A stretch of DNA of 64,000 nt, from positions 165,676 through 229,675 of the IMG/VR virus record IMGVR_UViG_3300013093_000017; one strand, given 5' to 3'. The translations under genes were made by a program, and so were the position numbers. Below, one piece after another: positions 26,331 to 63,600 of the stretch. Within the stretch, counting starts at the first letter, position 1, and each line of letters opens with the position of its first letter. The notes below the pieces were generated by a model. That model was given only the letters and a program-made list of their open reading frames with translations, searched no databases and was not told where the DNA came from.

Positions 26331-26338
26331 TATAAATA
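26331..26338 (+). promoter_or_regulatory. T4-type late promoter TATAAATA (representative of a recurring TAAATA motif)
   Basis: TAAATA core recurs at gene starts. Plus strand: 21582, 23648, 28501, 31631, 35905, 36254, 40315, 41656, 42156, 43283, 43818, 46000. Minus strand: 14549-54, 15025-30, 21572-77, 31655-62. Confidence 0.8.
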
Positions 26339-26346
26339 CATATATA

Positions 26347-27383: not shown

Positions 27384-27385
27384 AC

Positions 27386-27580: not shown

Positions 27581-27583
27581 TAG

Positions 27584-28030: not shown

Positions 28031-28067
28031 AAAACACCAGCTAACGCAGTAAAATACAGTATAGACT

Positions 28068-28495: not shown

Positions 28496-28534
28496 ACACA
28501 TAAATAAATTCATATTACCTATTAGGAATCGGAT

Positions 28535-29287
28535 ATGAGAATCGAAGAATTATTAGCTGAACAACAATTAGATGAGTTAGGTTGGAAGAATGGTACTCCC
28601 ACAAATGATGATGGAACTCCTTTACCTAAGAGTGGTATTGCTCAGGGTGTAAACAAAGTAGCTGGTGGTATAGGTAAAGCTGTAGGAGGAGTTGCAGGTG
28701 CATGGCAAGCTGCTAAACAAGGATATCAAACAGGTAAAGCTGCTGTATCAGGGCAAGGATCAAATACTCCCACGCAACCTAATGCCCCTGCTGGTCAAGG
28801 ATCTAATGTAACTACTGGTAATCAAACCTCACAAGGTGATACCCAAACAGTTGGTACTACTAAAACTGTAGGACAAACACAAACAACTCCCCAACCTAAC
28901 ACTGCAACTGCGCCTAGTGCGCCTGCTGGTCAAGAACCTGCACCACCTGCTAATACAGCACAAGCTGATCAACAGGCTAAAGTTGGAGTAGGTCAAATCA
29001 ATAAGATTATTCCCGGATTACGTACTCGTGATCTACAAAGTCTTAAGAAAACTATTGATCAACGTATGCAAGCAATGAATAAAACTCCTAATCCTACTGG
29101 ACAACAAACTCCTAATCAAGGTAATCAAACAGTGACCGCTGCTAATACTGTAGCAAATGCACCTGCAGGACAACAATCTAATGTGGGTAAATTTTCTGGA
29201 CAACCGGCGAATGTAACACAAGGCAATCCGTTAGCAATGGCAGAAAGCGCAGAATTCTACAGCAAGTTCCTAGGAAAGAATATTTAA
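28535..29287 (+). CDS. Low-complexity putative head-internal protein
   Basis: MRIEELLAE N-terminus; Q/T/P/A-rich; TAAATA at 28501 and AGGA RBS. Confidence 0.6.
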   Translation: MRIEELLAEQQLDELGWKNGTPTNDDGTPLPKSGIAQGVNKVAGGIGKAVGGVAGAWQAAKQGYQTGKAAVSGQGSNTPTQPNAPAGQGSNVTTGNQTSQGDTQTVGTTKTVGQTQTTPQPNTATAPSAPAGQEPAPPANTAQADQQAKVGVGQINKIIPGLRTRDLQSLKKTIDQRMQAMNKTPNPTGQQTPNQGNQTVTAANTVANAPAGQQSNVGKFSGQPANVTQGNPLAMAESAEFYSKFLGKNI

Positions 29288-39041: not shown

Positions 39042-40217
39042 ATGTCACAATTATTAAACGAAAGATGGTCAGAGACCAAAGACGCGCTGCTTGAAGGCCT
39101 ACAAGGTAACCGTAAAGCATCTATGAACGTAGTTTTAGAGAACACACGTAAGTACCTAGGCGAAGCAGCAACAGCAGGTGCAACAAGTTCTGGTAACGTA
39201 GCTACACTTAACCGTGTAATTCTTCCAGTAATTCGTCGTGTAATGCCAACAGTTATCGCTAATGAAATTATCGGCGTTCAACCAATGACAGGTCCAGTTG
39301 GACAAATCCACACATTGCGTGTACGTTACGCAGACAGTGGTGATGGTATTGTAGCTGGTGAAGAAGCATTATCACCATTCAAGATTGCTGCTGCTTACTC
39401 TGGTAACAACACTGACTCAAATCCAAAAGCTGCTTCAACAGCACAATTGGAAGGTCAACCAGGTAAACGCATGTCAATCCAAATCTTGAAAGCTCCAGTT
39501 GAAGCTAAGTCTCGTAAACTAAGCGCACGTTGGACTTTTGAGGCTGCTCAAGATGCACAAAGCCAACAAGGCATTGACATCGAAGCAGAAATCATGGCTG
39601 CACTAGCACAAGAAATTACTGCTGAAATTGACCAAGAGATCTTAGCATCTCTACGTGGTTTAGCTTCAGTAGAAGAAACATATGACCAAGCGTTAGTTTC
39701 AGGTACTGCTACATTCGTTGGTGATGAACATGCTGCTTTAGCAATTCAAATCAACCGTGTATCAAACTTGATCGCTCAACGTACACGTCGTGGCGCAGGT
39801 AACTGGGCAGTTGTTTCTAACCAAGCATTAACGATTTTACAATCTGCTACTACTTCAGCTTTTGCTCGTACAACAGAAGGTACATTCGAAGCTCCAACAA
39901 ATACTAAATTCGTTGGTACTTTAAACGGTGCTATGCGTATCTACGTTGACAGCTACAAAGCTGATACAGATACAACTAACCAAGTATTGATCGGTTATAA
40001 AGGTGCTTCAGAAGCTGATGCTCCTGCGTTCTACTGCCCATACATTCCTTTGATGTCAAGCGGTGTTGTATTAGATCCTAATACATTCGAACCAGTAGTT
40101 GGTTTCCTTACAAGATACGGCTACGTCGAGCTTTCAAATACTGCGAGTTCATTGGGCAATGCAGCTGACTACTTAGGTAAAGTGGCAATCAACAACCAAA
40201 CAGTTTCATTCAAATAA
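39042..40217 (+). CDS. gp23: Major capsid protein
   Basis: IIGVQPMTGP, AKSRKLSARWTFEAAQD, EITAEIDQEI, FYCPYIPL and FEPVVGFLTRYG motifs. Confidence 0.97.
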   Translation: MSQLLNERWSETKDALLEGLQGNRKASMNVVLENTRKYLGEAATAGATSSGNVATLNRVILPVIRRVMPTVIANEIIGVQPMTGPVGQIHTLRVRYADSGDGIVAGEEALSPFKIAAAYSGNNTDSNPKAASTAQLEGQPGKRMSIQILKAPVEAKSRKLSARWTFEAAQDAQSQQGIDIEAEIMAALAQEITAEIDQEILASLRGLASVEETYDQALVSGTATFVGDEHAALAIQINRVSNLIAQRTRRGAGNWAVVSNQALTILQSATTSAFARTTEGTFEAPTNTKFVGTLNGAMRIYVDSYKADTDTTNQVLIGYKGASEADAPAFYCPYIPLMSSGVVLDPNTFEPVVGFLTRYGYVELSNTASSLGNAADYLGKVAINNQTVSFK

Positions 40218-40325: not shown

Positions 40326-41102
40326 ATGAACAAATACGAAAAATGGTATAATAATATAGTAGCAATGGGCTTAATAGATCGCCCTAATATGCGCACTGCC
40401 CGGCACCACATCATTCCTGAGAGTTTTTTCAAGAATAGAACACGTAAAGGCCCCCCTGGGTGGTTAGATGGTAATCCTGATGATCCATCTAACCTCACAT
40501 TTCTTACAGGAAGGGAACACTTTATATGCCACTGGCTATTGACTAAGATTTATAGCGGAGAAGCTAAAGCCAAGATGATATATGCATTACGGATGATGAG
40601 AGCAGGAGAATACTATACAAAAATAACTGCAAGAGTATATTCTAATATAAAAGAAGAATATTCTAAAATTGCTAGTACCGCTGTTTCTGGAGAAAATAAT
40701 CCTATGTGGGGTAAAACACACACCGAAGAAACAAAAGATAAAATACGGCAAGCAAACCTAGGTAATCAAATAAATGAAGAACAGCGTAAAAAGATAAGTG
40801 ACAGCAAGTTAGGCAGAAAGCGTTCGCCATTTAGTGATGAGTGGATAGCAAATATAAAAGCGGCAAGGCAAGGTGAATTAAATGGTATGTATGGAAAAAA
40901 TCACTCAGAAGAAACTAGAAAGAAACAAAGCGAAAAAGCCAAAGGCAGAAAATATAGTGCAGATGTAGTTGAAAAACGTGCTGCAAAGATTAGAGGTAGT
41001 AAAAGAGAAAAACTTCTCTGCCCGCACTGTAATAAAGATGTAGCAGTAAATGGATATGCAAGATGGCACGGCGACAATTGTAAACTTAAAGGACCTAAAT
41101 AA
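40326..41102 (+). CDS. HNH homing endonuclease with NUMOD3 repeats
   Basis: HHIIP...NLTFLTGREHFICH; NPMWGKTHTEETKDKI and GMYGKNHSEETRKK repeats; C-terminal CPHC...RWHGDNCK. Confidence 0.85.
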   Translation: MNKYEKWYNNIVAMGLIDRPNMRTARHHIIPESFFKNRTRKGPPGWLDGNPDDPSNLTFLTGREHFICHWLLTKIYSGEAKAKMIYALRMMRAGEYYTKITARVYSNIKEEYSKIASTAVSGENNPMWGKTHTEETKDKIRQANLGNQINEEQRKKISDSKLGRKRSPFSDEWIANIKAARQGELNGMYGKNHSEETRKKQSEKAKGRKYSADVVEKRAAKIRGSKREKLLCPHCNKDVAVNGYARWHGDNCKLKGPK

Positions 41103-44863: not shown

Positions 44864-45187
44864 ATGGCGATATCAAACGTACGAGTAGAATCAACACAAA
44901 CTACAAAAATATTTATGGCACCTCTAAACGAGGAACATGCAATTACAACTATGTTTTTCTGTAATCAAGATTCATCAAATGATACAGCAATAGACATTTA
45001 TCTTGTTCCAGGTGGATCAGGATTAAGCACAGGCTCGCAGGTGATCAAATCATTAGCATTGCCTAGAACAGAAACATTTGTGTTTGATGCTGAGAAACTT
45101 ATCTTGGCCAATGGTGATACTATCTACGCAGAAGCTACAGTAGATAAGATTGTAGTAGCAACTATAAGTTCAGTTAAGACTTCATAA
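44864..45187 (+). CDS. Small virion structural protein (paralog of 53536-53931)
   Basis: KLILANGDTIYA resembles KMIIESLDSVICY in 53536-53931. Confidence 0.55.
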   Translation: MAISNVRVESTQTTKIFMAPLNEEHAITTMFFCNQDSSNDTAIDIYLVPGGSGLSTGSQVIKSLALPRTETFVFDAEKLILANGDTIYAEATVDKIVVATISSVKTS

Positions 45188-46099: not shown

Positions 46100-49000
46100 A
46101 TGGCCATAGGTCGCATTTCCGGTCCGCTGCTATCGAAAAACCTGTTACGTGACGGGGTTGATCTAGCATTTGAAACCGATTTATTATATCTCGACGTTAC
46201 AGACGGTCGCATCGGCATACGAAAAAGTAATCCAGCCTACGAGTTAGACGTCAACGGAACCATCAACGCAAACAATCTTCGAGTAACTTACACAGGTCCC
46301 GGCACAGGATCAGCAACACTTGGTAAGTTAACAATTAACTCAGGAACAATTTCAACTACTGTTGGTCCAGTAACAATTCAACCTAGCGGCAATGATAAGA
46401 TTAACCTAGTCGGTGACACAACCGTTACAGGAAACTTACACGCAACTGGCAATATTACATCAGATGGCGATATTACCATTGGTGATAACGCAAATATTGA
46501 TAATGTTGTATTCAATGCTGAAATTAAATCAAACATTATTCCGGCGGCCACCGGCCTATACACATTAGGTAATGAGAATAATTCTTGGGCAACTACCTAT
46601 GCCGACACAGTGGTTGCTAACGCATTATCTAGTCGTGGCAATATTGAAATCACCCCACATGGCGGTTTATTAGAAATCAACAGTGACATTCGCGTTAGTG
46701 GTAAGAATCCAATCGGTACTGCTCCGGTGGTTACCAACGTATTGTATGTAACAATGGACGGTAACGATACTAACGATGGCCGAGCACAAGATCCAAGTCG
46801 TGCATGTAAGACAATTAGTGGCGCTGTTCGTAGTCCTTACTATCGTCCGGGAACATTAATTCGTGTATCTAGCGGACACTATTACGAAAACAATCCAATT
46901 TTAATGCAGCCTAACACTGCTATCATCGGTGATGACTTACGTACAACTAGTATTGAGCCGATTAACAAAACACAAGATTTATTTCACGTACAATCTGGTT
47001 GCTATCTAGCACAGATGCAGTTCTTAAATGGCCGCAGTGGATTATTACCTGGTCCTTATGTTCCTGGAACTAACCGCGGCGCATTTGCTGTGGCATTTCC
47101 TCCAAGCGTAAACGGCAAAAAGTTAGATGTATATCAATCACCATATATACAAAACTGTACTAACCAAAGCGGTCCTTGGTTAATTGATGGTACTGTGTTT
47201 GTTCCTAACCAAACTATACAAGTTCCTACAGGAGTAGGAATGACACAATTTGAAGCCAACACTAACACAATTACTGTAACAGTGTCAGAAGGTGTAATTA
47301 AATTAGGCGACAACGTTATCAGCGGTCCGCAAGATCCTGGCTTCTTTAACGCAAGAACATTGTTGTTGGCAAACATACCATTTATAGAAGATCAAGCTAT
47401 AACATACATTAATGACCTAGTGCTGACTGCAACTAATACTAATGATATCGGAAATCCATTCTATAATTTTAAATATGAGCAATCTAAATGGTCACGAGAT
47501 TTAGGACTTATCATTCAAAACATTGCTTACGATGCTACATTTGGTGGTAACCAAAAGAGTGTCGAATCTGGCTTAGCCTACTACAACGGTGTTGTCAACC
47601 TAATCGAAGGTCAACAGACACAATTTACCACAGCAATTAATTACGTTAACACCTTAAGCCAAGCTATCATACAAAATATAGCGGTTACTCCTGTAAGTAC
47701 TGCTACAACACAGGTAATTAATACAGCATTAGTAAATGGCGTAATTGCCTCAGACGAGATCAATGCTGGTATCAGCATTATTACAAATATTATCAACAAC
47801 GGTCCTGGTGTTGCTCCGGCTGTGTTTAATAGTTGCGGCCCAGAAAATCCAAGCGTTAGCGCAGAAATATTATTACAAGCAAATAGAACATTCTTACAAG
47901 AAGAAGTAACTGCGTATGTAGACGCACAGTATCCAACCTTTGAATACAAAAAAGACTATTGCTACCGAGATGTTGGCTTGATCGTAGATGCGGTTAGCCA
48001 AGACATAATTGTAGGTGGCAACACAAAATCAATCGAAGCCGCATTAAGTTACTTCACAGGCAGCAAAGGAGATAGCAGCGTAGCTGAGCAGGCAATTACT
48101 AGCAACATTGAATTAATCAAAAATATTATCGTAAACGGTTCTGCTACAGCACCTACTCCTATATCAGGACCAAACCAAGGCACCGGATTTAGCAATGCCG
48201 CTGACCTACTAACTAAGAATAAATTATTCCTACAATCTGAAATCAGTGCGTATGTACGCACTATTATTACCTTAACTCCACAACAAGAAGCATTATGTTA
48301 TAGAGACCTTGGGCTAATTGTTGATGCTCTATCTGCTGACACAGGAGCAGGCGGCAATGTAAACAGCATCTATGCTGCCTTACAATATTTCAGCGGTATG
48401 ACTAACATCTTACCTAGCAATGAAATTACTCCATTAGCACAGGCGTTGGATTACATGGTTACCTTGTGTGCAAATATTGTTAAGAATACACAAAATACTA
48501 ATCTATATCAAAAATTAATTTCTCAAGTAATATCATTACCTGTGGCATCATTAGCAGAATACAATAGTGCCGCAGCTAATATAGATTTAATAACAGATAT
48601 TATCACAGTTGGCCCAAGTGCTGCTCCAACTGATGTGCCAATTAGTCTATCAATGTCAACTGCTACCACAGCATATAACGCATTTAGAATACTAACAGAA
48701 AATAAAGATTTCTTATCAGCAGAAGTAACTGGATATATTGACAGTGTATTTGGCGGCGGCTTTAACTACAATACAGGAACATGTTTTAGAGATACGGGAC
48801 TTATTGTAGACAGTCTAGCATTTGACCTATTATACCAAGGTAACACACAGGCTATATTTGCAGGTTCACAGTATTATAACCAAAGTACCTACACTGGTCA
48901 AATTGGTCGCGAACTAACCACAACCACTAATGCTATTAAGTATGCTAAGATGTTAGCAGAATTAGTAGCGGTTAATTCGACTGTGACTAATTTACAAGCA

Positions 49001-52000
49001 GTATCTACACAGACATTTGATCTATCTAATCCGGGATCAGATATTTCAACAGCAACGATTGAACAATTATTCAACACTGTTACTAATATATTAACTAATG
49101 GCACTGTGGGAATTACTAATCAAATAATTTCAAATAGTACAGCTTCTAGCGACCTTGGAATTATTAATGCATTTACTCTTGTACAGGCAAATAAACAGTT
49201 TATTGAAGACGAAGTAATAGCCTATGTTGATAGTCTTAATCCGTCATTTGTCTACGATCAAGTTAAATGTTCTAGAGATACTGGCTTAATTGTTAAAGCA
49301 CTAGCACAAGATTTAATGTTTAGTGGGAACAGTCAAAGTACATTTGCAGGATTACAATATTGGAATCAAAATGGTTACGTTGGCGCTATTTCAAATGAAT
49401 TAACCACTACAACCAATGCAATTACCTATATTAGAGATCTAGCAATTAAAGTAATAACATTAGATACTAGCGGAACACGCTATCAAACAGCCGTAGGTCA
49501 ATGGACCACAGGCACAGCCGCTACTATAGCTGAAACACAATCAGTTTATGACGACTTTAATCTAATCCTTGACATTATTACCAACGGAACAGCTAATGTA
49601 ACTGATAGAATTGTTTCTAATAGCCTAACTACCAGCACTAATGCTAATGTATTAAATGCTTATGCCTTATTAGAAGAGAATAAAGCATATTTACAAGCAG
49701 AAGCCATTGCTTTTGTTGAAGCCAGCAAGGCATTTGGCTTTGTTTATGATCCAGGTAAATGCAGTCGCGATATAGGTTACATGGTTGATAGCATTTCATT
49801 CGACTTATTATACGGTGGAAATAGACAGGCTATTCAAAGCGGTGTTTATTATTACGGCTTCTCCAATACTGCTACGCAAGTGCCAAATGAACAGGCACAG
49901 GTAAGTGCTGCCTACGATTATATTAAGACTCTAGCTTCATATATTGTTACTGGACAGCGTGTTCCTACACAATATCAAAGTATTGTTCCGCAGATTATTT
50001 CTGCAACTACAGGCACAGGATATCAAGCATCTTTAATTAACACTAACATTGATACTATTGTTAGCATTGTAAATGGTGGACCTACACTAGCAGGAACTCC
50101 GAGTCCGATATCATTAACTACATCGGGTGATATACACGATATTAATGCAGCAATGTTGTTAGATGCCAACATGGCGTTTATTCAAGCGGAAGTAATTGCG
50201 TATATTAACTATCTATATCCTACAGGATTTACCTACGATAGAACCAAATGTCGTAGAGATGTTGGTTATATTTTAGATTGTGTATGTTTTGATTTATTAA
50301 ACGGCGGTAATAGACAAAGTATTCAAGCAGGTGTATATTATTATGGATTTAACACATCATCTAGTGTATTAACCTACGAAATAGCACAGATAACGGCTGC
50401 GTACAATCATATCAAAACAATTGCTAACAATATTGTACAAAATATTCCAATAACTCCGACCTCTGGAAATACATATTCACAGGTCACATTAGGATCTACT
50501 GCTACTATTGCTGAAGCTGAATACATTGCCAGCGACATTGATATTATCACTGATATTATTAACACAGGTGATATTGATTTCTATCCTAAGACACCTATTA
50601 GTTTAACCGCAAGTGTTGATGCTAATATAGTTGCTACCTACGATCTACTATTAGCCAACAGAGAATTCATACAAAATGAATTAATTGCCTACATCAATTA
50701 TTATTTCGTTCAACCATTTGTGTATAATAAAGAAAAATGCGCACGTGATACTAAACTAATTGTTGATTCTATTGCACTTGACATATTATACGAAGGTAGT
50801 TCACAAAGTTCATTTGCTGCATTACAATATTGGAACCAATCTGGATACACCGGAGCGATTGCTAGTGAATTAACAACTACAACTAATGCTATAATCTATG
50901 CTAAAGGTCTAGTACAATCATACATTGTTACTCCAGATGAAAGTGATCAAGTTGGACATTTATTCGATACTATTGTAAATGTTATTACACAAGTGACCAC
51001 AGGCACTACTGATTTAATAGTTCCTAATGGTTTACCATCACCGGTTGTCTCAGTAAATAATGCTTATGCCGCAATTATAGCAAATAAGAGCGTGATACAA
51101 CAACAAACAGTTGATTATGTAAATGCTACTAACCCAGGTTTCGTTTATAATACATCAACCTGCTATAGAGATGTTGGCTACATTATAGATTGTGTGGCAT
51201 TTGACCTATTACACACTGGAAATAGACAAAGTATTCAAGCAGGAGTTTATTATTTCAGCTTTAACGGAACATCTAACCTAGTTGATACAGTCAGTGGCAA
51301 TCCTGAAATCCCACAATCTACTGCGGCCTACACCTATTTGAAATATCTAATGAAACAGGTGTTATTAAACAATCCAATAACACGCAGTTATCAAGTAGTT
51401 TATCCTCAGGTAATTATTCCAGCATATATGGGAATGGCCACTGTTATTCCTGGCGAACAAAATATTACAGTTGATGCTATTCACTATCTAAACGATTTAA
51501 GTTTAAATGTAATTAGTAATACTTCTGTACCTGTGGTACGTTCATCAACTGCACAGACTATGTACCCTAATTTTGAAGGCGGTGCTTATGCAGGTCCGGG
51601 TATAACTAGAAATTACAATACCATTGCCGATATTATTCAAAATGGACCAAATGTAGCACCAGTACCGTTTGCTGGCAGTGGATTATTTGCTACCACAGGT
51701 GTTAGTTCAGACGATGTACGACAAAGTCCAACAGTTATTGCCCTATCTACAGTGACAACTGGCACATATTTGGTAACATTGTCGGGGTCAACTGTAGGTG
51801 ATTCGCAAAACGGTACATTGTATTTTGGTAAAACTGAGGTTTATCCAGCACAAGATGCAGATGTACCCGACGAATGGGCACAACGTCGCGTTGATGTATT
51901 AGGTTCTATGGGCGGTGCACTGGTAGATGGTGCTGTAGTAAGTGCTCGTTCACCGATTCAGTCATTCGTATTTGACGCATATACTCAGGTTAACCAAGGC

Positions 52001-53524
52001 GGACGTGGGGTATATGTTACAAATAACGGCTACGCACAGTTAGTATCTGTGTTTACAATTTTCTGTTCAACTGCGGTACAGGTTGACAACGGTGGCATTT
52101 GTTCTATTACTAACTCTAACAGTAACTTCGGTGATCAATGTTTGGTGGCTAAAGGATATGGCAAATTAGAATTTAGTGGTACAGTGTTCAATCCTCCTTA
52201 TCCAAGTTACCAGCCAAACGGTCAATATTATCCGAATGGTTACTATCCTAAGAATGGTGTAGCGGAAATCTTCTTGCCAGATACTGCTAATCGTCCGCAT
52301 ATTGGTTTGGTAATGGAAATTGAACCGCCATTAGGTCATATTAACGAACAAGGTTATCCAGGATTCTTAAATGCTGCACCATCGTTGGCAACATTAACTA
52401 CAGGAACTATCACAATTGATGGTATTGACACAACAGGTATTGCTGTGGGTAATAGAGTAGACATCCGTGATCAATACGGCAACACCTATTATGTTGCCGA
52501 TGGCACAACAGTAGTTGATGTTAATTACCAAAGCATCACATTGAACAAAGGATTGATCAGTGGCGGCGGTGATCCAACTAATAGTAATTACTTTAACTTA
52601 TATTTCTCTGGCAATGCTTACTATACTGTACTGTCTAGTCAACTATCTGAAGCATATAATACAGGAACTAATGCTACTGTTATTCCTTCGGATCAAATAG
52701 GCCCAGAATTAGATGCATTAGCCTTCTTAAGAGATTCTAGTCTAGGAAATGTATTAGTAGGTGCTAGTGTTGATCCTAGCTCAATAACGTTTATTGACAA
52801 TAGTATTAACACAATTATCAGTATTGTAGGGGCAAGTGACCTAACTGCGGCACGTGCGGTTGTTCCAGCGCCATCTAAAGTAGGAACACCACCGAGTGGC
52901 GCAAGTCTAGCGATTACAACTATTAATAATAACATTGAAGCAATAGTAACTGCTACGATTGCCCACGTTGTGACCACATTCCCTGATATTAGTTTACCTA
53001 CAGGACTAGGAGCACCAACTGATTTAACCACCTATCTAACAAATAAATGTGCTAGAGATATTAGATTAGTCCTAAGACAACTAGTATACGATCTAGAAAC
53101 AGGTGGCAACTACTATTCAGCCTATGCTGGATTAAGTTATTGGATTCGTACAGGCACACATCACATCGTTGATCTTGGGGAAGCAGTTAATAATACTGCA
53201 CTATTCCCAGATGGCGCTATTGTAAACTTCTATCAACGTAGTTACATCAGTGCATCAGGATACTTGTTTGAGTATGTTGGTGCTGGAACTAACTATGGAG
53301 CACTACCTCAACGCGGAGTGGCTGATCCTGTACAAACCAAAGAAGTAATACAGTTAAATAATGGTAAGGTGTTCTTTACGTCAACAGACCAAAACGGTGA
53401 CTTTAGAATTGGTCCAGGATTAGTAGTAAGTCAAGCAACTGGTGTATTATCAGGACGCACATTTACTAAATCATTATTTGCAAACTTAACGCCATTCATA
53501 TTGGCAATTGAAGGCGGAGGCTAA
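46100..53524 (+). CDS. Giant virion protein: pectin-lyase-like beta-helix interrupted by ten helical phycobiliprotein/globin-like repeats
   Basis: YVTMDGNDTNDG...IRVSSGHYYE...IIGDDLRTT beta-helix cap; ten (C/W)xRDxxxxxxxxxxDxxxxG repeats; GAGGAG RBS. Confidence 0.75.
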   Translation: MAIGRISGPLLSKNLLRDGVDLAFETDLLYLDVTDGRIGIRKSNPAYELDVNGTINANNLRVTYTGPGTGSATLGKLTINSGTISTTVGPVTIQPSGNDKINLVGDTTVTGNLHATGNITSDGDITIGDNANIDNVVFNAEIKSNIIPAATGLYTLGNENNSWATTYADTVVANALSSRGNIEITPHGGLLEINSDIRVSGKNPIGTAPVVTNVLYVTMDGNDTNDGRAQDPSRACKTISGAVRSPYYRPGTLIRVSSGHYYENNPILMQPNTAIIGDDLRTTSIEPINKTQDLFHVQSGCYLAQMQFLNGRSGLLPGPYVPGTNRGAFAVAFPPSVNGKKLDVYQSPYIQNCTNQSGPWLIDGTVFVPNQTIQVPTGVGMTQFEANTNTITVTVSEGVIKLGDNVISGPQDPGFFNARTLLLANIPFIEDQAITYINDLVLTATNTNDIGNPFYNFKYEQSKWSRDLGLIIQNIAYDATFGGNQKSVESGLAYYNGVVNLIEGQQTQFTTAINYVNTLSQAIIQNIAVTPVSTATTQVINTALVNGVIASDEINAGISIITNIINNGPGVAPAVFNSCGPENPSVSAEILLQANRTFLQEEVTAYVDAQYPTFEYKKDYCYRDVGLIVDAVSQDIIVGGNTKSIEAALSYFTGSKGDSSVAEQAITSNIELIKNIIVNGSATAPTPISGPNQGTGFSNAADLLTKNKLFLQSEISAYVRTIITLTPQQEALCYRDLGLIVDALSADTGAGGNVNSIYAALQYFSGMTNILPSNEITPLAQALDYMVTLCANIVKNTQNTNLYQKLISQVISLPVASLAEYNSAAANIDLITDIITVGPSAAPTDVPISLSMSTATTAYNAFRILTENKDFLSAEVTGYIDSVFGGGFNYNTGTCFRDTGLIVDSLAFDLLYQGNTQAIFAGSQYYNQSTYTGQIGRELTTTTNAIKYAKMLAELVAVNSTVTNLQAVSTQTFDLSNPGSDISTATIEQLFNTVTNILTNGTVGITNQIISNSTASSDLGIINAFTLVQANKQFIEDEVIAYVDSLNPSFVYDQVKCSRDTGLIVKALAQDLMFSGNSQSTFAGLQYWNQNGYVGAISNELTTTTNAITYIRDLAIKVITLDTSGTRYQTAVGQWTTGTAATIAETQSVYDDFNLILDIITNGTANVTDRIVSNSLTTSTNANVLNAYALLEENKAYLQAEAIAFVEASKAFGFVYDPGKCSRDIGYMVDSISFDLLYGGNRQAIQSGVYYYGFSNTATQVPNEQAQVSAAYDYIKTLASYIVTGQRVPTQYQSIVPQIISATTGTGYQASLINTNIDTIVSIVNGGPTLAGTPSPISLTTSGDIHDINAAMLLDANMAFIQAEVIAYINYLYPTGFTYDRTKCRRDVGYILDCVCFDLLNGGNRQSIQAGVYYYGFNTSSSVLTYEIAQITAAYNHIKTIANNIVQNIPITPTSGNTYSQVTLGSTATIAEAEYIASDIDIITDIINTGDIDFYPKTPISLTASVDANIVATYDLLLANREFIQNELIAYINYYFVQPFVYNKEKCARDTKLIVDSIALDILYEGSSQSSFAALQYWNQSGYTGAIASELTTTTNAIIYAKGLVQSYIVTPDESDQVGHLFDTIVNVITQVTTGTTDLIVPNGLPSPVVSVNNAYAAIIANKSVIQQQTVDYVNATNPGFVYNTSTCYRDVGYIIDCVAFDLLHTGNRQSIQAGVYYFSFNGTSNLVDTVSGNPEIPQSTAAYTYLKYLMKQVLLNNPITRSYQVVYPQVIIPAYMGMATVIPGEQNITVDAIHYLNDLSLNVISNTSVPVVRSSTAQTMYPNFEGGAYAGPGITRNYNTIADIIQNGPNVAPVPFAGSGLFATTGVSSDDVRQSPTVIALSTVTTGTYLVTLSGSTVGDSQNGTLYFGKTEVYPAQDADVPDEWAQRRVDVLGSMGGALVDGAVVSARSPIQSFVFDAYTQVNQGGRGVYVTNNGYAQLVSVFTIFCSTAVQVDNGGICSITNSNSNFGDQCLVAKGYGKLEFSGTVFNPPYPSYQPNGQYYPNGYYPKNGVAEIFLPDTANRPHIGLVMEIEPPLGHINEQGYPGFLNAAPSLATLTTGTITIDGIDTTGIAVGNRVDIRDQYGNTYYVADGTTVVDVNYQSITLNKGLISGGGDPTNSNYFNLYFSGNAYYTVLSSQLSEAYNTGTNATVIPSDQIGPELDALAFLRDSSLGNVLVGASVDPSSITFIDNSINTIISIVGASDLTAARAVVPAPSKVGTPPSGASLAITTINNNIEAIVTATIAHVVTTFPDISLPTGLGAPTDLTTYLTNKCARDIRLVLRQLVYDLETGGNYYSAYAGLSYWIRTGTHHIVDLGEAVNNTALFPDGAIVNFYQRSYISASGYLFEYVGAGTNYGALPQRGVADPVQTKEVIQLNNGKVFFTSTDQNGDFRIGPGLVVSQATGVLSGRTFTKSLFANLTPFILAIEGGG

Positions 53525-53535: not shown

Positions 53536-53931
53536 ATGGCATTAATACCATTAAACACGTTTAAAACAAAAACAGCGATATTACAAGGTGATTGGACCTA
53601 CGGAACAACCGCCACGGTATATACAGCACCAATTGGCGTTACATCAATTATATTAATGACACAGGTAGCTAATGTTAGCACACAGACTCATACAGTTACA
53701 TTTGCTCATTCAAGAAATTTTCCAATATTTGCCGATGCACAAGGTAATGGAGCTCAACCAGCAGGTGTAGTTACTGAATTGATACAACAATTTGCTATTC
53801 CGACTAATGATGCGGCTAGTCTAACCACTGGTAAAATGATTATTGAAAGTCTTGACAGTGTAATTTGTTATGCAGATGCAGATGGTGTAATGAAATTAAC
53901 TATGAGTATCTTGGAGACAGCTAATGCCTAG
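53536..53931 (+). CDS. Small virion structural protein
   Basis: TVYTAPIGVTSIILMTQVAN motif; GAGGA RBS. Confidence 0.6.
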   Translation: MALIPLNTFKTKTAILQGDWTYGTTATVYTAPIGVTSIILMTQVANVSTQTHTVTFAHSRNFPIFADAQGNGAQPAGVVTELIQQFAIPTNDAASLTTGKMIIESLDSVICYADADGVMKLTMSILETANA

Positions 53932-56900
53932 TTTAATTAGCGGCCGCACACTTGTTACCAGCGCGCCGAATCTACAAGATAGCCGCTATCAATTCCTAAA
54001 TCTAGCCCAAGCACAACCTGCGCTTGGCCCTACTCCTTCAACTAGCACAGGATATACTCTAGTTGCTGGACCAAACGGCTCGGTAGCCTACACAAATAGT
54101 TTAGGAAATTTAATATTCTCAACAGGTACTATTAGTACAAACTTACCTAATGAAAATATAACATTAGTTACAACCGGCACAGGCATTATACAATTATCGT
54201 CTAGTCTAGTAAGTGTTGATGTTGCAATGACATTTACCAATGTATCAGGGTATATAGATCTAGGCGGTCGCCCTAGTTATCGTATTCCAAATTACTACGA
54301 AGGCATCACTCCACCAGATAACACACAGTTCTGGGCAGGCGACCAATGGTATGATCAGGTTAATGATGTCTTATATGAATACACCTTAGACGACAGCGGC
54401 CCGTCGTGGGTAGATATTACAGGTCCGTTCTTTAGTACATCAGTATCAAACGGATTTATAGGCAGTGGTGGCGGAGGCAGCGGCAATGGATATACCGGAT
54501 CTAAAGGTGATGTAGGTCCAAGTGGTGGATATACTGGCTCACGAGGTAGTCAAGGATATTATGGAAGTCGAGGTTACATAGGTAGTATCGGTACAGGTTA
54601 CCAAGGTAGTCAAGGTACTACTGGATATACGGGTAGTTTTGGAAATCAAGGATACACAGGTAGCCGAGCATATACTGGTAGTACTGGTTATGTTGGATCA
54701 CAAGGTATATCAGGATACTACGGTAGCCAAGGAACATTAGGTTATACTGGCAGTCGCGGCTTTACCGGCAGCACAGGTTATGTCGGATCACAGGGCATTA
54801 CTGGATACACAGGCAGTTTGGGATATGTAGGTAGCCGCGGTTACACAGGTAGTCGAGGTGACACAGGGTATACCGGTAGTCAAGGTGCTATGGGATATAC
54901 TGGTAGTCTGGGATATTTCGGTAGTCAAGGATACACCGGAAGCCAAGGCATTACAGGATATATTGGTTCACAAGGCCTTCAAGGATATTTCGGAAGCCAA
55001 GGATATTTCGGAAGCCAAGGCTACACTGGATCGCAAGGTATTCAAGGTATTCAAGGTAACACGGGATTTAATGGTAGCTTTGGTTACACAGGTAGTCGAG
55101 GCATTACTGGATACTACGGATCGCAAGGTATTGTAGGGTTTACTGGATCACAGGGCTATTTTGGTAGTCAAGGGTATTTTGGTAGTCGAGGAGTTACAGG
55201 ATTTGATGGTAGTCAAGGGGTTATCGGCTATACCGGATCACAGGGCTACACCGGATCACAGGGATTCTTTGGATCACAAGGAGTGGTTGGATTTAACGGT
55301 AGCCGTGGCGACCTTGGATACACTGGTAGTCAAGCGTATACTGGTAGTATAGGCTTTGTCGGTAGTCAAGGCACTGTTGGATATAATGGATCACTTGGTG
55401 GCATCGGATATGCTGGTAGTATTGGATATACTGGATCACAAGGGGTAGTAGGATATGTTGGCTCGCAAGGTGACCTCGGCTATGCTGGTAGTATTGGATA
55501 TACTGGATCACAAGGGGTAGTAGGATATGTTGGCTCGCAAGGTGACATCGGATATGTAGGTAGCTTAGGATATGCGGGCAGTGTCGGATATGTCGGTAGC
55601 CAAGGGCTTGGATATACAGGAAGCCAAGCGTATACTGGTAGCATAGGTTTTGTTGGTAGTCAAGGAATTATTGGGTATACTGGTAGTATTGGTGGCATTG
55701 GATATACAGGTAGTATCGGGTACACTGGTAGTCAAGGCACACTTGGTTATTTTGGTAGCTATGGGTATACAGGTAGTGTCGGATATACAGGCAGTCGTGG
55801 GTATACTGGCAGCATTGGCTATGTAGGCAGCATTGGCTACGTAGGTAGTTCAGGAGCATTTGGTGCTATTGGATTTACTGGAAGTCAAGGTAATATTGGA
55901 TATGTAGGCAGCATCGGATATGTAGGTAGTCAAGGACTTGGTTATGCTGGTAGTGTAGGTATTGGGTACACAGGTAGTCTAGGCTATGTTGGTTCAATAG
56001 GATATACCGGAAGTCAGGGTATTACTGGTTATGTTGGATCATTCGGTAGTCAAGGTATAATTGGTTACGTCGGAAGTATTGGTTATGTAGGTAGCACAGG
56101 ATCGTTTGGTGCAATTGGATTTACAGGTAGTACTGGTTATGTTGGCAGTCAAGGCATTACTGGTTACACAGGTAGTACCGGAGCCGCAGGTGCGGGCGGA
56201 TACCTAGGTAGTATCGGCTATACCGGTAGTCAAGGTGCTACGGGATATCTCGGTAGTCAAGGTAATATTGGCAATATAGGATATGCAGGTAGTCGCGGAG
56301 TAACTGGATTTAATGGTAGTCAAGGCTCTATTGGATATTCGGGTAGTATCGGCTATACTGGTAGTGCAAGTACTGTACAGGGACCAACGGGATATACAGG
56401 CAGCGGAAGCGCCTCGGTGTCAGCAACACCGACCTCAATTGGTAGTGTTTATGCCTATACAACCTCAACCCGAAACAATACCGCATTAGGCTACTGTGCC
56501 GGCAATACAACAATGGTCGGTCGTAGTAATGTTGCTATTGGATACGGAGCTTTGGGTGTAAACACCTATGGTTCCAATAATATAGCAATGGGCTGTTTTG
56601 CATTAACATTTAATACCGCTGGATGTGCCAATGTCGCATTAGGATACAGTGCAATGCACGACAACTGCTACGGTGGATGTAATATTGCCCTAGGATGGCA
56701 GGCTTTATATGCTAATCAAACTGGTTGCAATAATATTGCAATTGGATGTACAGCATTAGTTAATGCAAATAATACTGGAACTAACATTGGTATAGGTGCT
56801 GCTGCTGGTATTAATATTACAACTGGTATTAATAATACTGTTATTGGTTCATTACCAGCCGCTGCTGGTTGTGTATGTACAGTATTAATTGGTGCAGGTA

Positions 56901-58576
56901 CCTGTGAACGTATACTTGTAAATGACAGCGGTATGACCATCAATGGATTATACACTGTAAGTACAGCATCGGCTGTAGTAGCAGCTACTCCAACAGTATT
57001 AGGTACTGTTTACGCTTATACTCCAAGTACTTACGGTAATGTATTTGTCGGTTATTGTGCCGGTAATAATACAGTAACTGGCGGCGGCAATATTGCCCTA
57101 GGAGGTGCTTCACTTAGAAATGTCACAACCGGCGGTAACAATATTGCCATCGGTGGTAGTGGTACACTTTGCAGTCTTAACATAGGTAGCAATAATATTG
57201 CTATCGGGTCTCACACATTATCTGCAACTACTAGCAGTTATGCTAACATAGCAATAGGACATGGGTCATTGTCCTGTAACTCTACAGGACAATGTAATAT
57301 TGCTTTGGGGTGTAGCCTTTATTATAATACCTACGGCAATAATAACATTGCAATGGGAGCTGGGGCATTGTTCTGTAACTCTACAGGCACTAACAACTTT
57401 GCAGCAGGGTGGGATAGTTTAAAATCAAATTTATCCGGCTGCGATAACATTGCAATCGGCTATAACGCAAACAGTAACGGTGGTGGCTCGTGTAATATCG
57501 CACTCGGAGCTAATGCACTTGGTGGTATTTGCTTCACAAGCACAAACAATATCGGTATTGGTGCGTGTACCTTAGCTAATCCGTTTGGCGGCGCTGGATC
57601 TTGCAACATTGCAATCGGGTGCTATGCATTTGGTTGCTTAACTGGTGGGTTTGGTAATAATATTGGTATTGGTGTATGTGCAGGGTATGGTATTAATAAC
57701 GGTGGGAATAATACTGTTATTGGTAATCTAGTAGGAGGCTGTACTTGCCAATATACTGTATTAATCGGCGCAGGTACATGTGAACGTATTCGTGTTGATA
57801 ACAGCGGATTATATATTAACGGAACAATATTTACAGCAGGCGGCGGATACACAGGTAGTGTTGGTTATATTGGATCAGCAGGCTCTGCAGGAACAAATGG
57901 ATATACCGGTAGTACTGGTTACGTAGGATCACAAGGTATAGGCTATGCTGGTAGTATCGGGACCGGATATACCGGCAGTGCGAGTACCGTACAAGGACCA
58001 CTTGGATATACTGGTAGTATCGGCTACGCAGGTAGCATTGGATATGTAGGCAGTGCTAGTAGCATAATTGGTTACACTGGTAGTAGTGGTGCTGCATCCT
58101 ATCAAGGATATACTGGATCACAAGGTATTGGATACGTGGGCAGTATTGGATATGTAGGTAGCACAGGTCCGGGAGTATCAACTTCTACTAATATGCAGGT
58201 TAATAGCCTAGGTGTTGGAGTAGTAGCATCGGGAACAACTGGCGAAATACGTGCTACCAATGCCATTACTTCTTACTACTCAGATGAAAGATTGAAGACT
58301 AACCTCGGTAACATACCTAATGCACTAGACAAGTTATTAACATTAGATGGGTTCTACTATGAAGCCAATCAACTAGCACAGACATTAGGCTATGCAGTTA
58401 AACGAGAAGTAGGTATATCAGCACAACAGGTGCAAAAAGTATTGCCAGAAGTAGTAACGCCGGCACCGATTGATAGTCAATACCTAACTGTGTATTATGA
58501 AAGATTAGTGCCATTGTTGATAGAAGCAATTAAAGAATTGAAAGCAGAAGTTGATCAATTAAAAGGAAAGAATTAA
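53924..58576 (+). CDS. Tail fibre: collagen-like Gly-X-Y stalk, Cys-rich N-x-A-x-G beta-roll modules and C-terminal intramolecular chaperone (peptidase S74-like)
   Basis: Long GY(T/V)GS(Q/I/R) triplet run; NIAIG repeats; YSDERLKTN...GISAQQVQKVLPE...YERLVPLLIEAIKEL. Confidence 0.85.
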   Translation: MPSLISGRTLVTSAPNLQDSRYQFLNLAQAQPALGPTPSTSTGYTLVAGPNGSVAYTNSLGNLIFSTGTISTNLPNENITLVTTGTGIIQLSSSLVSVDVAMTFTNVSGYIDLGGRPSYRIPNYYEGITPPDNTQFWAGDQWYDQVNDVLYEYTLDDSGPSWVDITGPFFSTSVSNGFIGSGGGGSGNGYTGSKGDVGPSGGYTGSRGSQGYYGSRGYIGSIGTGYQGSQGTTGYTGSFGNQGYTGSRAYTGSTGYVGSQGISGYYGSQGTLGYTGSRGFTGSTGYVGSQGITGYTGSLGYVGSRGYTGSRGDTGYTGSQGAMGYTGSLGYFGSQGYTGSQGITGYIGSQGLQGYFGSQGYFGSQGYTGSQGIQGIQGNTGFNGSFGYTGSRGITGYYGSQGIVGFTGSQGYFGSQGYFGSRGVTGFDGSQGVIGYTGSQGYTGSQGFFGSQGVVGFNGSRGDLGYTGSQAYTGSIGFVGSQGTVGYNGSLGGIGYAGSIGYTGSQGVVGYVGSQGDLGYAGSIGYTGSQGVVGYVGSQGDIGYVGSLGYAGSVGYVGSQGLGYTGSQAYTGSIGFVGSQGIIGYTGSIGGIGYTGSIGYTGSQGTLGYFGSYGYTGSVGYTGSRGYTGSIGYVGSIGYVGSSGAFGAIGFTGSQGNIGYVGSIGYVGSQGLGYAGSVGIGYTGSLGYVGSIGYTGSQGITGYVGSFGSQGIIGYVGSIGYVGSTGSFGAIGFTGSTGYVGSQGITGYTGSTGAAGAGGYLGSIGYTGSQGATGYLGSQGNIGNIGYAGSRGVTGFNGSQGSIGYSGSIGYTGSASTVQGPTGYTGSGSASVSATPTSIGSVYAYTTSTRNNTALGYCAGNTTMVGRSNVAIGYGALGVNTYGSNNIAMGCFALTFNTAGCANVALGYSAMHDNCYGGCNIALGWQALYANQTGCNNIAIGCTALVNANNTGTNIGIGAAAGINITTGINNTVIGSLPAAAGCVCTVLIGAGTCERILVNDSGMTINGLYTVSTASAVVAATPTVLGTVYAYTPSTYGNVFVGYCAGNNTVTGGGNIALGGASLRNVTTGGNNIAIGGSGTLCSLNIGSNNIAIGSHTLSATTSSYANIAIGHGSLSCNSTGQCNIALGCSLYYNTYGNNNIAMGAGALFCNSTGTNNFAAGWDSLKSNLSGCDNIAIGYNANSNGGGSCNIALGANALGGICFTSTNNIGIGACTLANPFGGAGSCNIAIGCYAFGCLTGGFGNNIGIGVCAGYGINNGGNNTVIGNLVGGCTCQYTVLIGAGTCERIRVDNSGLYINGTIFTAGGGYTGSVGYIGSAGSAGTNGYTGSTGYVGSQGIGYAGSIGTGYTGSASTVQGPLGYTGSIGYAGSIGYVGSASSIIGYTGSSGAASYQGYTGSQGIGYVGSIGYVGSTGPGVSTSTNMQVNSLGVGVVASGTTGEIRATNAITSYYSDERLKTNLGNIPNALDKLLTLDGFYYEANQLAQTLGYAVKREVGISAQQVQKVLPEVVTPAPIDSQYLTVYYERLVPLLIEAIKELKAEVDQLKGKN
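55409..55546 (+). repeat. 72-bp tandem duplication (66 bp identical) in the collagen-like region
   Basis: TATGCTGGTAGTATTGGATATACTGGATCACAAGGGGTAGTAGGATATGTTGGCTCGCAAGGTGAC at 55409 and 55481. Confidence 0.9.
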
Positions 58577-60660: not shown

Positions 60661-60673
60661 GGGAAAATAACAA

Positions 60674-63600
60674 ATGGCAACAATAAAAGATTTCATAGTC
60701 AAAGCTGGTCTCCAGATTGAAAGCTCAACTAATTCCACCAGTACTAATACTGGTGCCTTACGTGTACAAGGTGGTGCAGGCATTGCTGGCGATTTGTGGG
60801 TTGGTGGCACAATCTACATGCAGGGCGCAGGCCTTGATTCTGTAAGCAGTACAACTGGTACATTTGTCAATGTTTATGTAACTGGTACTAACGTAGCCAC
60901 TAATACATATTCTGGTGCTGTAGTTGTCACAGGCGGTATGGGTGTTGGCGGTAGCTTATATGGTACTGCATTATATGACAGTGGTGCTCGTGTACTTACT
61001 ACTGCTACTATTGGCAGCTTTGGTGTTAGCGTACTAACAGCAGGAACAGATACTGCGGTCAGCGCATCTTCCGGTCCAGTAACTATTTGGGATACTAGTA
61101 CTTTACAAAGTGTAACTAGTCGTGGTGCTACAACTAATAATGCTATCATCATTACAAATGCTAGTGTAAGTACTGGTTCAACTACTGGTGCATTACAGAT
61201 AACAGGTGGATTGGGTGTAGGTGGTGTGGCAAATATCGCTTCACAATTAACTGTTGGTTTAAACTACGGTTATAACACCCTAACAAACACAATTGCATAC
61301 TTTGGTGCAAACACCTCAACATTTGCTCAGGTTAATCTACAGAACATTGGCGGCGGCACCAGTTCATCAGTTGACTTTATTGCAACAGCCAATAACGGTA
61401 ATGACACAACTGGCTATATCGACCTAGGTATTAACAATAGTTCATTTTCTGATGCATCATTTACCATTGTTGGTGCAGGCGATGGTTACTTATATTCACA
61501 AGGTGGTAACTTTGGTATTGGTGCAGCAGCATCAGGTAAAGATATCATATTCTTCCAAGGCGACACCTTAGCTGCTAATGAAGTAGGTCGTTGGGCAAAT
61601 GGTCAAGGCCTAACAATTAAACAAGGTACTAACGCCAGCAATACCAACACTGGTGCATTGATTGTACAAGGCGGCTCGGGCATTTGGGGTAACTTGTTTG
61701 TTGGTGGCAACACTAATCTACAGGGTGTAACAGCTACCACACTAACATTGTCTAGTACATTAAACGCTGCGGCTGCAAACTTTAGTGGTCAAGTGGCAAT
61801 CACCAATACCACAAACGGTACAAGTACCAGCACAGGACAGGCATTATTAGTAAGTGGTGGGGTTGGTGTAGGTGGTAATGTTTACTCAAGCGGTAACATT
61901 GTTACTTTAAATTCTACCGCAGCCACACAAGCAGGCGCTGGCGCAGTACAGGTAAGTGGTGGTGTTTACATTGCCAACAACTTGGTTGTTAACGGGTCAG
62001 GTTCAAGTACCAGTACCACAGCAACCAACGCATTAGTTGTAACTGGTGGTGCTAACATTGGTAAAAACTTGATTGTTGGCGGTCCAACAATATTCCAAGA
62101 TACTGTAACATTCAATGGTACTGCAACCTACGTTTATTCAACAAATACCTACTACACAGATAATATTATTGAAATACATACCCCACCGGGTGGTGTTTAT
62201 AGTAATTGGGAGTATGACGACGGTAAAGATATCGGATTCCGTTTCCACTACTATGCTAACAGTACAGACACAAATGCTGCTCTAGTATTAGCTGATGATA
62301 CTAAAATGTTGGAATGGTACGGTTCAGGTGCTGAATCAAGCACAGGTACATTTGCAGGCGCAGCATACGGTGGTATTAAAACTGGTTACATGTATTTGGT
62401 CACAGCCACAAATGCTACCAGCGCCAGCACAGGTGCACTACAATTACGTAATGGTGGTTTAGGTGTTGCCTTAGATGGTTGGTTTGGTGGTGTAGGTACA
62501 TTTAACAGTACCACAGACACCACAGGTGCAGGCACAGGTGGATTGATCACCTTAGGTGGTCTAGGCATTTCCAAAGCTGTTTACGTGGGTACCACAGCCA
62601 CAGTAGCAGGTGCAGGATCAAGTTCGTCAGGTGTTGCTGGTAACGCATTACAGGTAACCACAGGTGGCCTAGGTGTCAACGGTGCAGGTTACTTTGGTGG
62701 CGCAGTACTAGTAGCATCAAATACCAACGGTACCAGCACAAGTTCAGGTCAAGCATTATTAGTCACTGGCGGGGTTGGTATTGGTGCTAATTTATATGTC
62801 GGTGGACTAGCAGTACATCAAAATACCACAGATGCAGCTCTAACCAGTGCAGGTTCAAGTGGCTCTATACAGACCACTGGTGGTGCAGGTGTTGCCAAAA
62901 ACCTAGCAGTAGGCGGAACAATTTCACGCACCGGTGCTGTAAGTCAAGCAAGTTGGCAAGGTGCAACTGGTGTGGCATTAAACCTAGCAGCCGCAACCTA
63001 CACAGATACAACCACAGCAGGTACAGTACAAGGTCCAAATGCAGCAACATGGTTAGGTCAACCTACCCTGGCAGCAACCAACACCAGTACCTATACTGAT
63101 GCGGCTACTTTATATATTGCCAATGCTCCAACAAATGGCACAAACGTAACATTAACCAATCCCTACGCATTATTAGTTGCCAACGGGGTAGTTGGTATTA
63201 GATCTACAACCAGTGCCACAAGCACCTCAACTGGTGCATTGCAGATTGCAGGCGGGGTGGGCATCGGTGGTAGTGTATATGCTGGCCCTATCTACTCAAA
63301 CGGTAGTGCTGTTATTACTTCAGCAAGTTTAGGTAGTTATGGTGTTTCAACTATTGCAGCTGGTACAGATACTTCAGTATCAACAAGTATTGGTGCTGTG
63401 ACTGTTTGGAATAACAGTACATTACAAACAATTACTAACCGCGGTGCTACAACCAATAATGCATTAAGCATCACCAACACAACAATCAGTGCCAGCACTA
63501 ACTCAAGTCAGGCATTATTAGTAAGTGGTGGTATTGGTGCTCAAGCAGTTTACGCAGGTGCATTATATGATACTGGTAATAGAGTTGTTACCAGCGTGGC

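Follow-up and report, generated by a model that had tools for sequence, protein, structure and literature searches.

Phycobiliproteins (PBPs) are regarded as the light-harvesting proteins of cyanobacteria and algae, a setting that Rockwell, Martin and Lagarias (2023, PMC10151467) recently extended with the BBAGs (bilin biosynthesis-associated globins), which occur in heterotrophic bacteria and in some cyanobacteria and make up, with the PBPs, a wider clade of bilin-binding globins. Here we describe PBP-like domains polymerised in what is likely a virion appendage. They lie in the 2,474-amino-acid, tail-fibre-type product of a giant open reading frame (ORF; 46100–53524, plus strand, from the ORF list and its translation) in a 64,000-nucleotide stretch of IMG/VR virus record IMGVR_UViG_3300013093_000017 (record positions 165,676 to 229,675), hereafter the window. 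About two thirds of this protein consists of an all-helical domain of approximately 162 residues, in nine tandem copies and a separate tenth. The domain very probably belongs, as a diverged member, to the bilin-binding globin (phycobiliprotein) family, and by sequence its nearest known relative is an alpha-type PBP, phycocyanin alpha. Apparently it is an undescribed variant of that family, new both in its architecture and in its biological context.

Several described systems share features with this protein. Phycocyanin alpha (CpcA, PF00502; Protein Data Bank (PDB) entries 1JBO, 8IML and 3BRP) is likewise an all-helical unit of about 162 residues, colinear with the phage domain over CpcA residues ~26–138 and alike in the helix-E signature K83-C84-x-R86-D87-x-G89-Y90...L99..G102-G103 (10 identities in 22). 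CpcA, however, is a free subunit with a beta partner, whereas the phage domain occurs as ten copies in one giant virion protein that has no such partner. The phage domain also has Asp in place of Arg93, no X helix or clear H helix, a shorter B–E loop in the array copies, additional invariant residues (Asp98 and Tyr114) and no lyase gene nearby. The BBAGs are PBP-family globins outside light harvesting, some of which have the CXRD motif and bind bilins without lyases, but they are single-domain cellular proteins encoded beside heme oxygenase (HO), FDBR and V4R genes; the phage repeats are part of a structural gene, and neither HO nor FDBR was found in the 64 kb. ApcE, the core-membrane linker (LCM) of phycobilisomes, carries a PBP-like domain inside a large multi-domain protein; it is cellular and membrane-associated and has one such domain followed by linker (REP) domains, in contrast to the tandem domains of the phage virion protein. 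Cyanobacteriochrome-like GAF folds of cyanophages (PMC12481020, 2025) are another case in phage genomes of a putative bilin-photoreceptor-type fold recognized by structure prediction, although these proteins are GAF rather than globin, small, non-structural and encoded by siphovirus-type phages. Giant proteins of T4-like cyanomyoviruses have the same KCxRD repeat, a structural annotation and, where the C terminus aligns, the same C-terminal module; they differ in belonging to Kyanoviridae phages, in having fewer copies and in a whole-protein identity of only 22–29%.

Ten repeats in a giant tail-fibre-type protein

The first-pass annotation of the window, made from the letters alone, had reported ten repeats in this ORF, with a C-x-R-D motif in nine and Trp in place of Cys in the first. 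A search with the pattern [CW].RD returns exactly ten sites at the same nucleotide positions, corresponding to residues 464 (W), 621, 733, 895, 1057, 1221, 1384, 1547, 1688 and 2317 (all C). Successive sites are 157, 112, 162, 162, 164, 163, 163, 141 and 629 residues apart, so that five of the nine spacings fall in the range of 486–492 nucleotides that had been given for most of them. The three 21-residue examples and the flanking helices quoted there are all present in the translation, and the phycocyanin motif given for comparison agrees with the aligned PDB chains. The parts of the protein are as follows.

46100–47230, plus strand: N-terminal non-repeat region, residues 1–377; beta-solenoid-like at 100–138, DUF1565-like at 219–279
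47231–47719, plus strand: repeat 1, residues 378–540; KWSRD, Trp for Cys at nucleotide 47489; profile score 119.6 bits
47735–48091, plus strand: repeat 2, residues 546–664, shortened; YCYRD, Cys at 47960; 124.1 bits over profile positions 5–128
48074–48532, plus strand: repeat 3, residues 659–811; LCYRD, Cys at 48296; 124.6 bits
48539–49015, plus strand: repeat 4, residues 814–972; TCFRD, Cys at 48782; 173.3 bits
49031–49504, plus strand: repeat 5, residues 978–1135; KCSRD, Cys at 49268; 182.4 bits
49514–49999, plus strand: repeat 6, residues 1139–1300; KCSRD, Cys at 49760; 187.9 bits
50003–50488, plus strand: repeat 7, residues 1302–1463; KCRRD, Cys at 50249; the repeat modelled with AlphaFold2 (AF2)
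50495–50929, plus strand: repeat 8, residues 1466–1610; KCARD, Cys at 50738; 163.4 bits
50930–51415, plus strand: repeat 9, residues 1611–1772; TCYRD, Cys at 51161; 158.1 bits
51434–51670, plus strand: two short repeat remnants, residues 1779–1818 and 1830–1857; weak partial profile matches (13.3 and 7.1 bits)
51671–52777, plus strand: non-repeat middle region, residues 1858–2226, possibly beta-rich; PHROG tail-fibre families match residues 1933–2025
52778–53257, plus strand: repeat 10, residues 2227–2386; KCARD, Cys at 53048; long PBP-like B–E loop; the most PBP-like copy
53258–53521, plus strand: ultra-conserved C-terminal module; the conservation begins near residue 2370 and overlaps the end of repeat 10

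A profile scan of the six-frame translated window recovered these ten units and two remnants, and no further copies elsewhere in the 64 kb. The separate tenth repeat belongs with the array: a profile built from the nine array repeats recovers it at 55 bits (E 4.5e-19), and the array copies are 17–25% identical to it. The alignment of all ten contains no conserved stretch of 7–10 columns; R86, D87, D98, G103 and Y114 are invariant, and CxRD is kept in nine of the ten (W-x-R-D in repeat 1).

Relationship to phycobiliproteins

That the repeats are related to PBPs, with the same register as phycocyanin alpha at Cys84/Arg86/Asp87 and the same GG turn, had been proposed in the first-pass annotation and is borne out by several searches, which place them closest to phycocyanin alpha. 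The whole protein matches Pfam PF00502 (‘Phycobilisome protein’) at 36.2 bits against a gathering cut-off of 22.2, the match falling on repeat 10 (residues 2271–2338, profile positions 34–97), which alone scores 26.9 bits. Repeat 7 alone stays below threshold (15.6 bits, E 0.016, profile positions 72–137). When 73 diverse copies from the window and 38 related viral loci were each scanned singly, 13 matched PF00502 at E<=0.1, whereas 16 other families were matched once each and none recurred. Automated PF00502 matches to homologues are already present in databases, where a precomputed match accompanies some two thirds of the 120 best-listed homologues.

Searches against PDB sequences point the same way. 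The top PDB sequence matches of repeat 10 are phycocyanin alpha chains (residues 40–104). A ten-repeat profile run against all PDB sequences places phycocyanin alpha in its first ten positions (E 5e-4 to 5e-3), aligning repeat positions ~44–104 with chain residues ~33–103, and retrieves no entry that contains the phage domain itself. The alignments put the repeat motif on CpcA Cys84/Arg86/Asp87, and a weaker colinear signal extends beyond helix E into helix G.

We also compared the repeats with 75 CpcA and 71 CpcB sequences drawn from 80 cyanobacterial loci. With hhalign, 317 phage copies aligned to CpcA with a probability of 91.6% (E 8e-7), compared with only 7.6% for CpcB; reversing the phage profile lowered the CpcA score from 43.9 to 12.7 and the probability to 0.2%. 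Over 22 helix-E residues the phage consensus equals CpcA at 10 and CpcB at 6, and CpcA equals CpcB at 9. Nodosilinea CpcA matched a repeat in a tblastn search of the viral loci (E 7.7e-7), its residues 26–138 being 27% identical to one repeat over 113 residues. This alignment covers N-[YF] of the B–E loop, K-C-x-R-D, G-G and the helix-G pattern A-[IL]-x-[YH]-[IV]-K, and so takes in the EALKYIK-type likeness of helix G pointed out earlier.

A chance or convergent C-x-R-D in an unrelated helical repeat would account for the facts that single array repeats fall below the Pfam threshold and that the strongest signal spans only about 27 residues. This explanation is already close to refuted: the whole protein exceeds a curated threshold, the 13 matching copies find the same family in the same register with no other family recurring, the score collapses on profile reversal, the pairwise alignment extends over 113 residues, and PBPs monopolise the ranks of the fold searches described below.

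Other searches returned little. Megablast of the giant ORF gave no match among phage records, tblastn of repeat 10 gave none among plasmids, and short single-domain relatives (89–283 residues) in a word-indexed search were only fragments from short contigs, with no PBPs among them at E<=10.

Conservation of the CXRD site

From 120 giant homologues and viral loci we gathered 1,994 distinct full copies of the repeat (effective number of sequences, Neff, 1,238). Across these, Cys84 is conserved in 99.0%, Arg86 in 99.5%, Asp87 in 99.8%, Asp98 in 99.8% and Tyr114 in 99.9%, followed by Gly89 (91%) and Lys83 (66%); typical hydrophobic core positions vary far more than the CXRD residues. Only 20 copies lack the Cys; 7 of them, like the one in the window, stand first in their array. 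No residues are better conserved across some 2,000 diverged copies than Cys, Arg, Asp, Asp98 and Tyr114, from which we infer that the CXRD pocket is in use; on this pattern of conservation the site is probably functional and under strong selection.

Other PBP features have gone. Asp13 and Arg93 have a role in the pairing of PBP alpha and beta subunits, and both are invariant in an alignment of A. marina alpha and beta sequences. The features that build alpha/beta rings are lost in the phage domain: position 93 is Asp instead of the PBP Arg in 87% of the copies, and no segment aligns confidently with helix X. The loss of these oligomerisation features supports an exaptation without chromophore, in which a captured PBP-like gene was polymerised into a ligand-free helical spacer and the residues Cys, Arg, Asp, Asp98 and Tyr114 are kept for the stability of the bundle or a trimer, to which they would contribute buried polar networks or contacts between chains. 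We regard this as a serious contender, though with somewhat less than an even chance. In its favour, phage fibres often reuse cellular domains as rod modules, and the copy number of this domain ranges from 2 to about 36 among relatives. It fits less well with the retention of one free Cys at 99% in about 2,000 copies of an extracellular protein, which would be odd for a purely structural role, and with the fact that the three most conserved residues are the ligand contacts of the parent family whereas core positions vary much more. Even if free of pigment, the array would represent a photosynthetic-antenna protein of the host turned into a phage structural building block.

Mean-field direct coupling analysis (DCA) of the 1,994 copies recovered a tight E–F hairpin (93–109, 89–114 and 85–113), B–E and E–G contacts, and contacts of the first helix with A and F. 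This covariation sets the surroundings of Tyr114 beside the C-x-R-D turn, at residues 85–89 of helix E. Such proximity also suits a third possibility, that CXRD and Tyr114 serve another chemistry: an axial metal site, or an autocatalytic cross-link that would harden the fibre, either Cys–Tyr or between Cys and an adjacent chain. An invariant set of Cys, Asp, Asp and Tyr would supply typical ligands, and the T4 fibre proteins gp12 and gp37 hold metal ions on the trimer axis. Precedent is lacking in the PBP/BBAG family, however, and Arg86 is no metal ligand, so we judge this reading improbable.

Predicted fold

The repeat had also been described as having a globin fold. An AF2 model of repeat 7 and the beginning of repeat 8, computed from an alignment of 73 sequences (pLDDT 87.4), is all-helical. 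Its six helices, at 7–26, 45–56, 58–72, 81–101, 105–116 and 123–146, are colinear with those of PBPs, namely (Y or H), A, B, E, F and G. In a Foldseek search of the PDB, PBPs were the best 16 matches to this model, with probabilities of up to 0.93, E 0.04–0.7, TM-scores of 0.26–0.39 and a root-mean-square deviation of 17–20 Å. Against BFVD models of true homologues (cyanophage tail proteins, including S-PM2 GC-830) the TM-score was also only ~0.3–0.39. Because they are equally low for undoubted phage homologues, TM-scores from this tool do not discriminate here. A second AF2 model, of repeat 10 with the C terminus, is of low confidence (pLDDT 50.9, moderate in the helices); its best 50 PDB matches are all PBPs, mostly phycocyanin alpha, and alignments of 72–86 residues superpose at 3.4–4.4 Å.

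For helices A/B, E and F, these models support a local arrangement like that of PBPs. The complete globin-like tertiary fold is only partly supported: the domain is all-helical, its helices are colinear with A, B, E, F and G and PBPs are the top matches, but whole-domain TM-scores are low and only 72–86 residues of the low-confidence repeat-10 model superpose.

Distribution among phages

An exhaustive profile search for the repeat in 1.84 billion representatives returned 1,446 clusters (50% identity) at E<=1e-3, and the 120 best-listed homologues of the repeat region carry 10 to 23 copies (median 17). Metagenomic relatives reach 35–36 copies in proteins of 4,384–6,382 residues, with 36 copies in one protein of 6,382 residues.

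Among 50,697 phage records, tblastn matched 372 and 353 records that are confined to cyanophages: myoviruses named for Synechococcus, Prochlorococcus or ‘Cyanophage’, and a few named only as marine or uncultured viruses. T4-like cyanomyoviruses are the only cultured phages in which it occurs. In S-PM2 the repeat is present in at least five copies in p091 (3,338 residues, ‘tail fiber’, T4-GC 830), whose neighbours p089, p090 and p092 are annotated as structural. In P-HM2, PHM2_086 (gp7-like, 4,454 residues) has KCARD and KCIRD copies, two of them strong; PHM2_096 of the same phage and gp329 of Synechococcus phage B3 also bear the repeat. The annotations of relatives are tail fibre, baseplate wedge or virion structural protein. 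In full-text literature searches we found no account of PBP-like domains in structural proteins of phages and no publication linking PF00502 with phage, nor did we find one on the PBP relationship of S-PM2 p091, PHM2_086, PHM2_096 or B3 gp329. Rockwell et al. (PMC10151467) do not mention phage globins.

The phage and its probable fibre gene

The window carries a T4-type structural module, with gp25-like and gp5-like proteins, a T4 baseplate protein, portal, prohead protease and capsid, together with collagen-like fibres and gp46/47. The giant ORF lies downstream of the portal, prohead protease and major capsid genes, PHROG tail-fibre families match its product (E 1e-92 to 1e-19), and a 357,895-bp NCBI contig has the same synteny around the giant gene. 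The first-pass annotation had called the product a virion protein; this context, the PHROG families and the structural annotation of its relatives all agree, and we think it likely that the protein is a tail fibre or baseplate appendage of the virion.

The phage itself is an uncultured jumbo phage related to T4. Its major capsid protein (39042–40217) is 62–72% identical to those of jumbo phages of Proteobacteria, namely Vibrio phage 2.275.O, Sinorhizobium phage Phosso, 121Q, GAP32, PA5oct, RaK2 and Atu_ph07. All 89 capsid records at 60% identity or more are from such phages and none is from a cyanophage. With the capsid nearest to 121Q/PA5oct-type jumbo phages, we rejected an identity as an ordinary cyanophage of the Kyanoviridae. 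The window contains no tRNAs, which we looked for as a clue to the host. The whole fibre gene is shared with cyanomyoviruses alone. The host may therefore be a cyanobacterium, or genes may have been exchanged with cyanophages, and the domain is a marker that links this uncultured jumbo-phage lineage to cyanophages.

A host outside the cyanobacteria would suit an origin of the domain from a BBAG-type globin of heterotrophic bacteria, or from an old sister lineage, rather than from cyanobacterial phycocyanin. Such PBP paralogues exist in non-photosynthetic bacteria, some have CXRD and self-assemble with bilin (PMC10151467), and the capsid and other backbone genes of the phage are nearest to jumbo phages of Proteobacteria. 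We nevertheless consider this origin unlikely: the best matches are consistently phycocyanin alpha, in a comparison set that held no BBAG sequences, and among the 50,697 phage records only cyanophages bear the domain.

A possible biliprotein fibre

The explanation that we favour combines a fibre array derived from PBPs, a functional CXRD site and, preferably, the use of bilin; taken as a whole it stands evenly poised between right and wrong. We hypothesize that the array is a modular rod, that the copy number sets the length of the appendage and that the rod is probably trimeric, as in other fibres, an arrangement that would account for the failure of AF2 to fold the C-terminal module as a single chain (pLDDT ~30). 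In PBPs and in self-assembling BBAGs, CXRD is the motif that attaches the bilin and forms hydrogen bonds with it (PMC10151467). As in the parent family, the Cys would attach a linear tetrapyrrole through a thioether, either by self-catalysis, as in BBAGs and in ApcE, which attaches its bilin autocatalytically (PMC2327270), or with the help of host lyases during assembly. The fibre would thereby be a biliprotein, for which light-gated adsorption and photoprotection are candidate roles of the pigment. Bilin binding is the most economical reading in that it is the family's own function, but covalent binding at CXRD is a tentative proposal, slightly more doubtful than not.

Several observations weigh against it, many of which count equally in favour of the ligand-free spacer. 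The B–E loop of the array copies is about 10 residues shorter than in PBPs and the repeats lack a clear counterpart of helix H or helix X, so that the pocket may be incomplete; repeat 10 retains the long loop and for this reason scores better against Pfam. Trp is tolerated at the Cys position of repeat 1, where it replaces the bilin-attaching residue. Whole-domain TM-scores to PBPs of only 0.26–0.42 weigh little either way. The Cys-alpha84 site of phycocyanin requires a dedicated lyase, CpcE/F (PMC2327270). Sequence alone reveals no chromophore, the host is unestablished and the backbone genes resemble those of phages of Proteobacteria. We know of no report of a pigmented cyanophage particle, although we estimate roughly that at usual titres a load of tens to a few hundred bilins per particle would go unseen.

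Bilin genes are also missing from the neighbourhood, a further point that the spacer explanation accommodates. In tblastn searches with HO, PcyA and CpcT of A. marina and PebS and CpeT of P-HM2, no HO, bilin reductase or lyase was found in the 64-kb window, nor was one found in 8-kb flanks around 38 related loci; the earlier statement that the window holds no bilin reductase or lyase gene therefore stands at the sensitivity of tblastn. P-SSM2, conversely, has ho1 and pebS and lacks the PBP-like domain (249 of 252 kb scanned), which again fits a domain without pigment and means that phage bilin genes do not require the domain. On the same grounds we discarded the possibility that phages keep bilin genes for the specific purpose of loading these domains.

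Bilin genes do occur beside other fibre genes. In P-HM2, a cluster of fibre genes directly follows cpeT (locus extract 19862–27654), and in P-SSM2 one follows a heme oxygenase gene, with only an HNH endonuclease gene between (locus extract 11308–29194). The PBP-like domain is absent from the fibre genes at both places.

Domain content and light-dependent adsorption

Adsorption of some cyanophages is light-dependent yet independent of photosynthesis, and the array may have a bearing on this behaviour in S-PM2, P-HM1 and P-HM2. According to Liu et al. (PMC6628666), darkness prevents adsorption of P-HM1 and P-HM2 but not of P-SSM2 and P-SSP7, and adsorption of S-PM2 depends on light (PMC6628666). 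The domain is present in S-PM2, P-HM1 and P-HM2 and, on scanning, is absent from P-SSP7 as it is from P-SSM2. Domain content and light dependence thus agree in all five phages (Fisher p = 0.1), of which P-HM1 and P-HM2 are close relatives and not independent; the match is weak, a lead rather than evidence.

If the fibres were biliproteins that act as the light sensor, the virus particle itself would perceive light, and cyanophages in which both co-occur would encode an acceptor for their own bilin genes, which would bear on why cyanophages carry such genes at all. That the fibres of many cyanomyoviruses and of this jumbo lineage are true biliproteins, with a bilin attached covalently to the CXRD Cys of each repeat, and the sensor behind light-dependent cyanophage adsorption, nevertheless seems to us an unlikely, if far-reaching, extension.

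Other regions of the giant protein

The array had been said to split a pectin-lyase-like beta-helix, a claim for which only the N-terminal half finds some support. The match to DUF1565, a family that we take to belong to Pfam's pectate-lyase clan, covers residues 219–279 below threshold (E 0.015), and nothing corresponding was found for residues 1767–2233. The only other Pfam match of the N-terminal region, to Bactofilin, is likewise below threshold (E 0.0036), and a search for PDB sequence relatives of this region found none. The middle region has no sequence match in Pfam or the PDB.

No Pfam or PDB relative was found for the C-terminal module, to which the C termini of PHROG tail-fibre families align (residues 2361–2471). 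Its last ~105 residues (window 53210–53521) are nearly invariant, with more than 50 invariant columns among 29 otherwise diverged homologues. In all 28 distinct homologue C termini a CXRD copy is positioned about 157 residues before the end, followed by this near-invariant module of ~105 residues. The C terminus is normally the variable part of a fibre, so that such near-invariance is unusual. The fibre C terminus also matches phages of many aquatic hosts.

Neighbouring genes

Two small ORFs that match phrog_1276 flank the giant gene. One (44864–45187, 107 residues) is about 900 nucleotides upstream, with a 261-residue ORF between, and the other (53536–53931, 131 residues) is directly downstream. 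The two are weakly similar to each other (E 7e-4), and the pair flanks the giant gene likewise on the 357,895-bp relative (locus extract 8853–9182 and 19820–20206). Their products may be fibre assembly or connector proteins.

A second giant ORF (2–11104, minus strand; at least 3,701 residues) extends past the left edge of the window. Over ~60% of its length it shares 29% identity with ‘virion structural proteins’ of jumbo Pseudomonas phages of the PA5oct type, and the profile scan of the window found no PBP-like repeats in it. Three homing-endonuclease-like ORFs are interspersed among the core genes: a GIY-YIG type (26326–27141), a SegE-like GIY-YIG type (27584–28030) and a NUMOD3 type (40326–41102) directly after the capsid gene. 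Downstream of the array gene, a collagen-like fibre protein of 1,550 residues (53924–58576) is encoded in DNA with a raised GC content (0.45) and a strong GC skew (+0.27). In its C-terminal part the protein is similar to tail proteins of P-SSM2 and of phages of Roseobacter, Pelagibacter and Methylophilales. A further long ORF (~60670–64000, plus strand; at least 1,110 residues) runs off the right edge.

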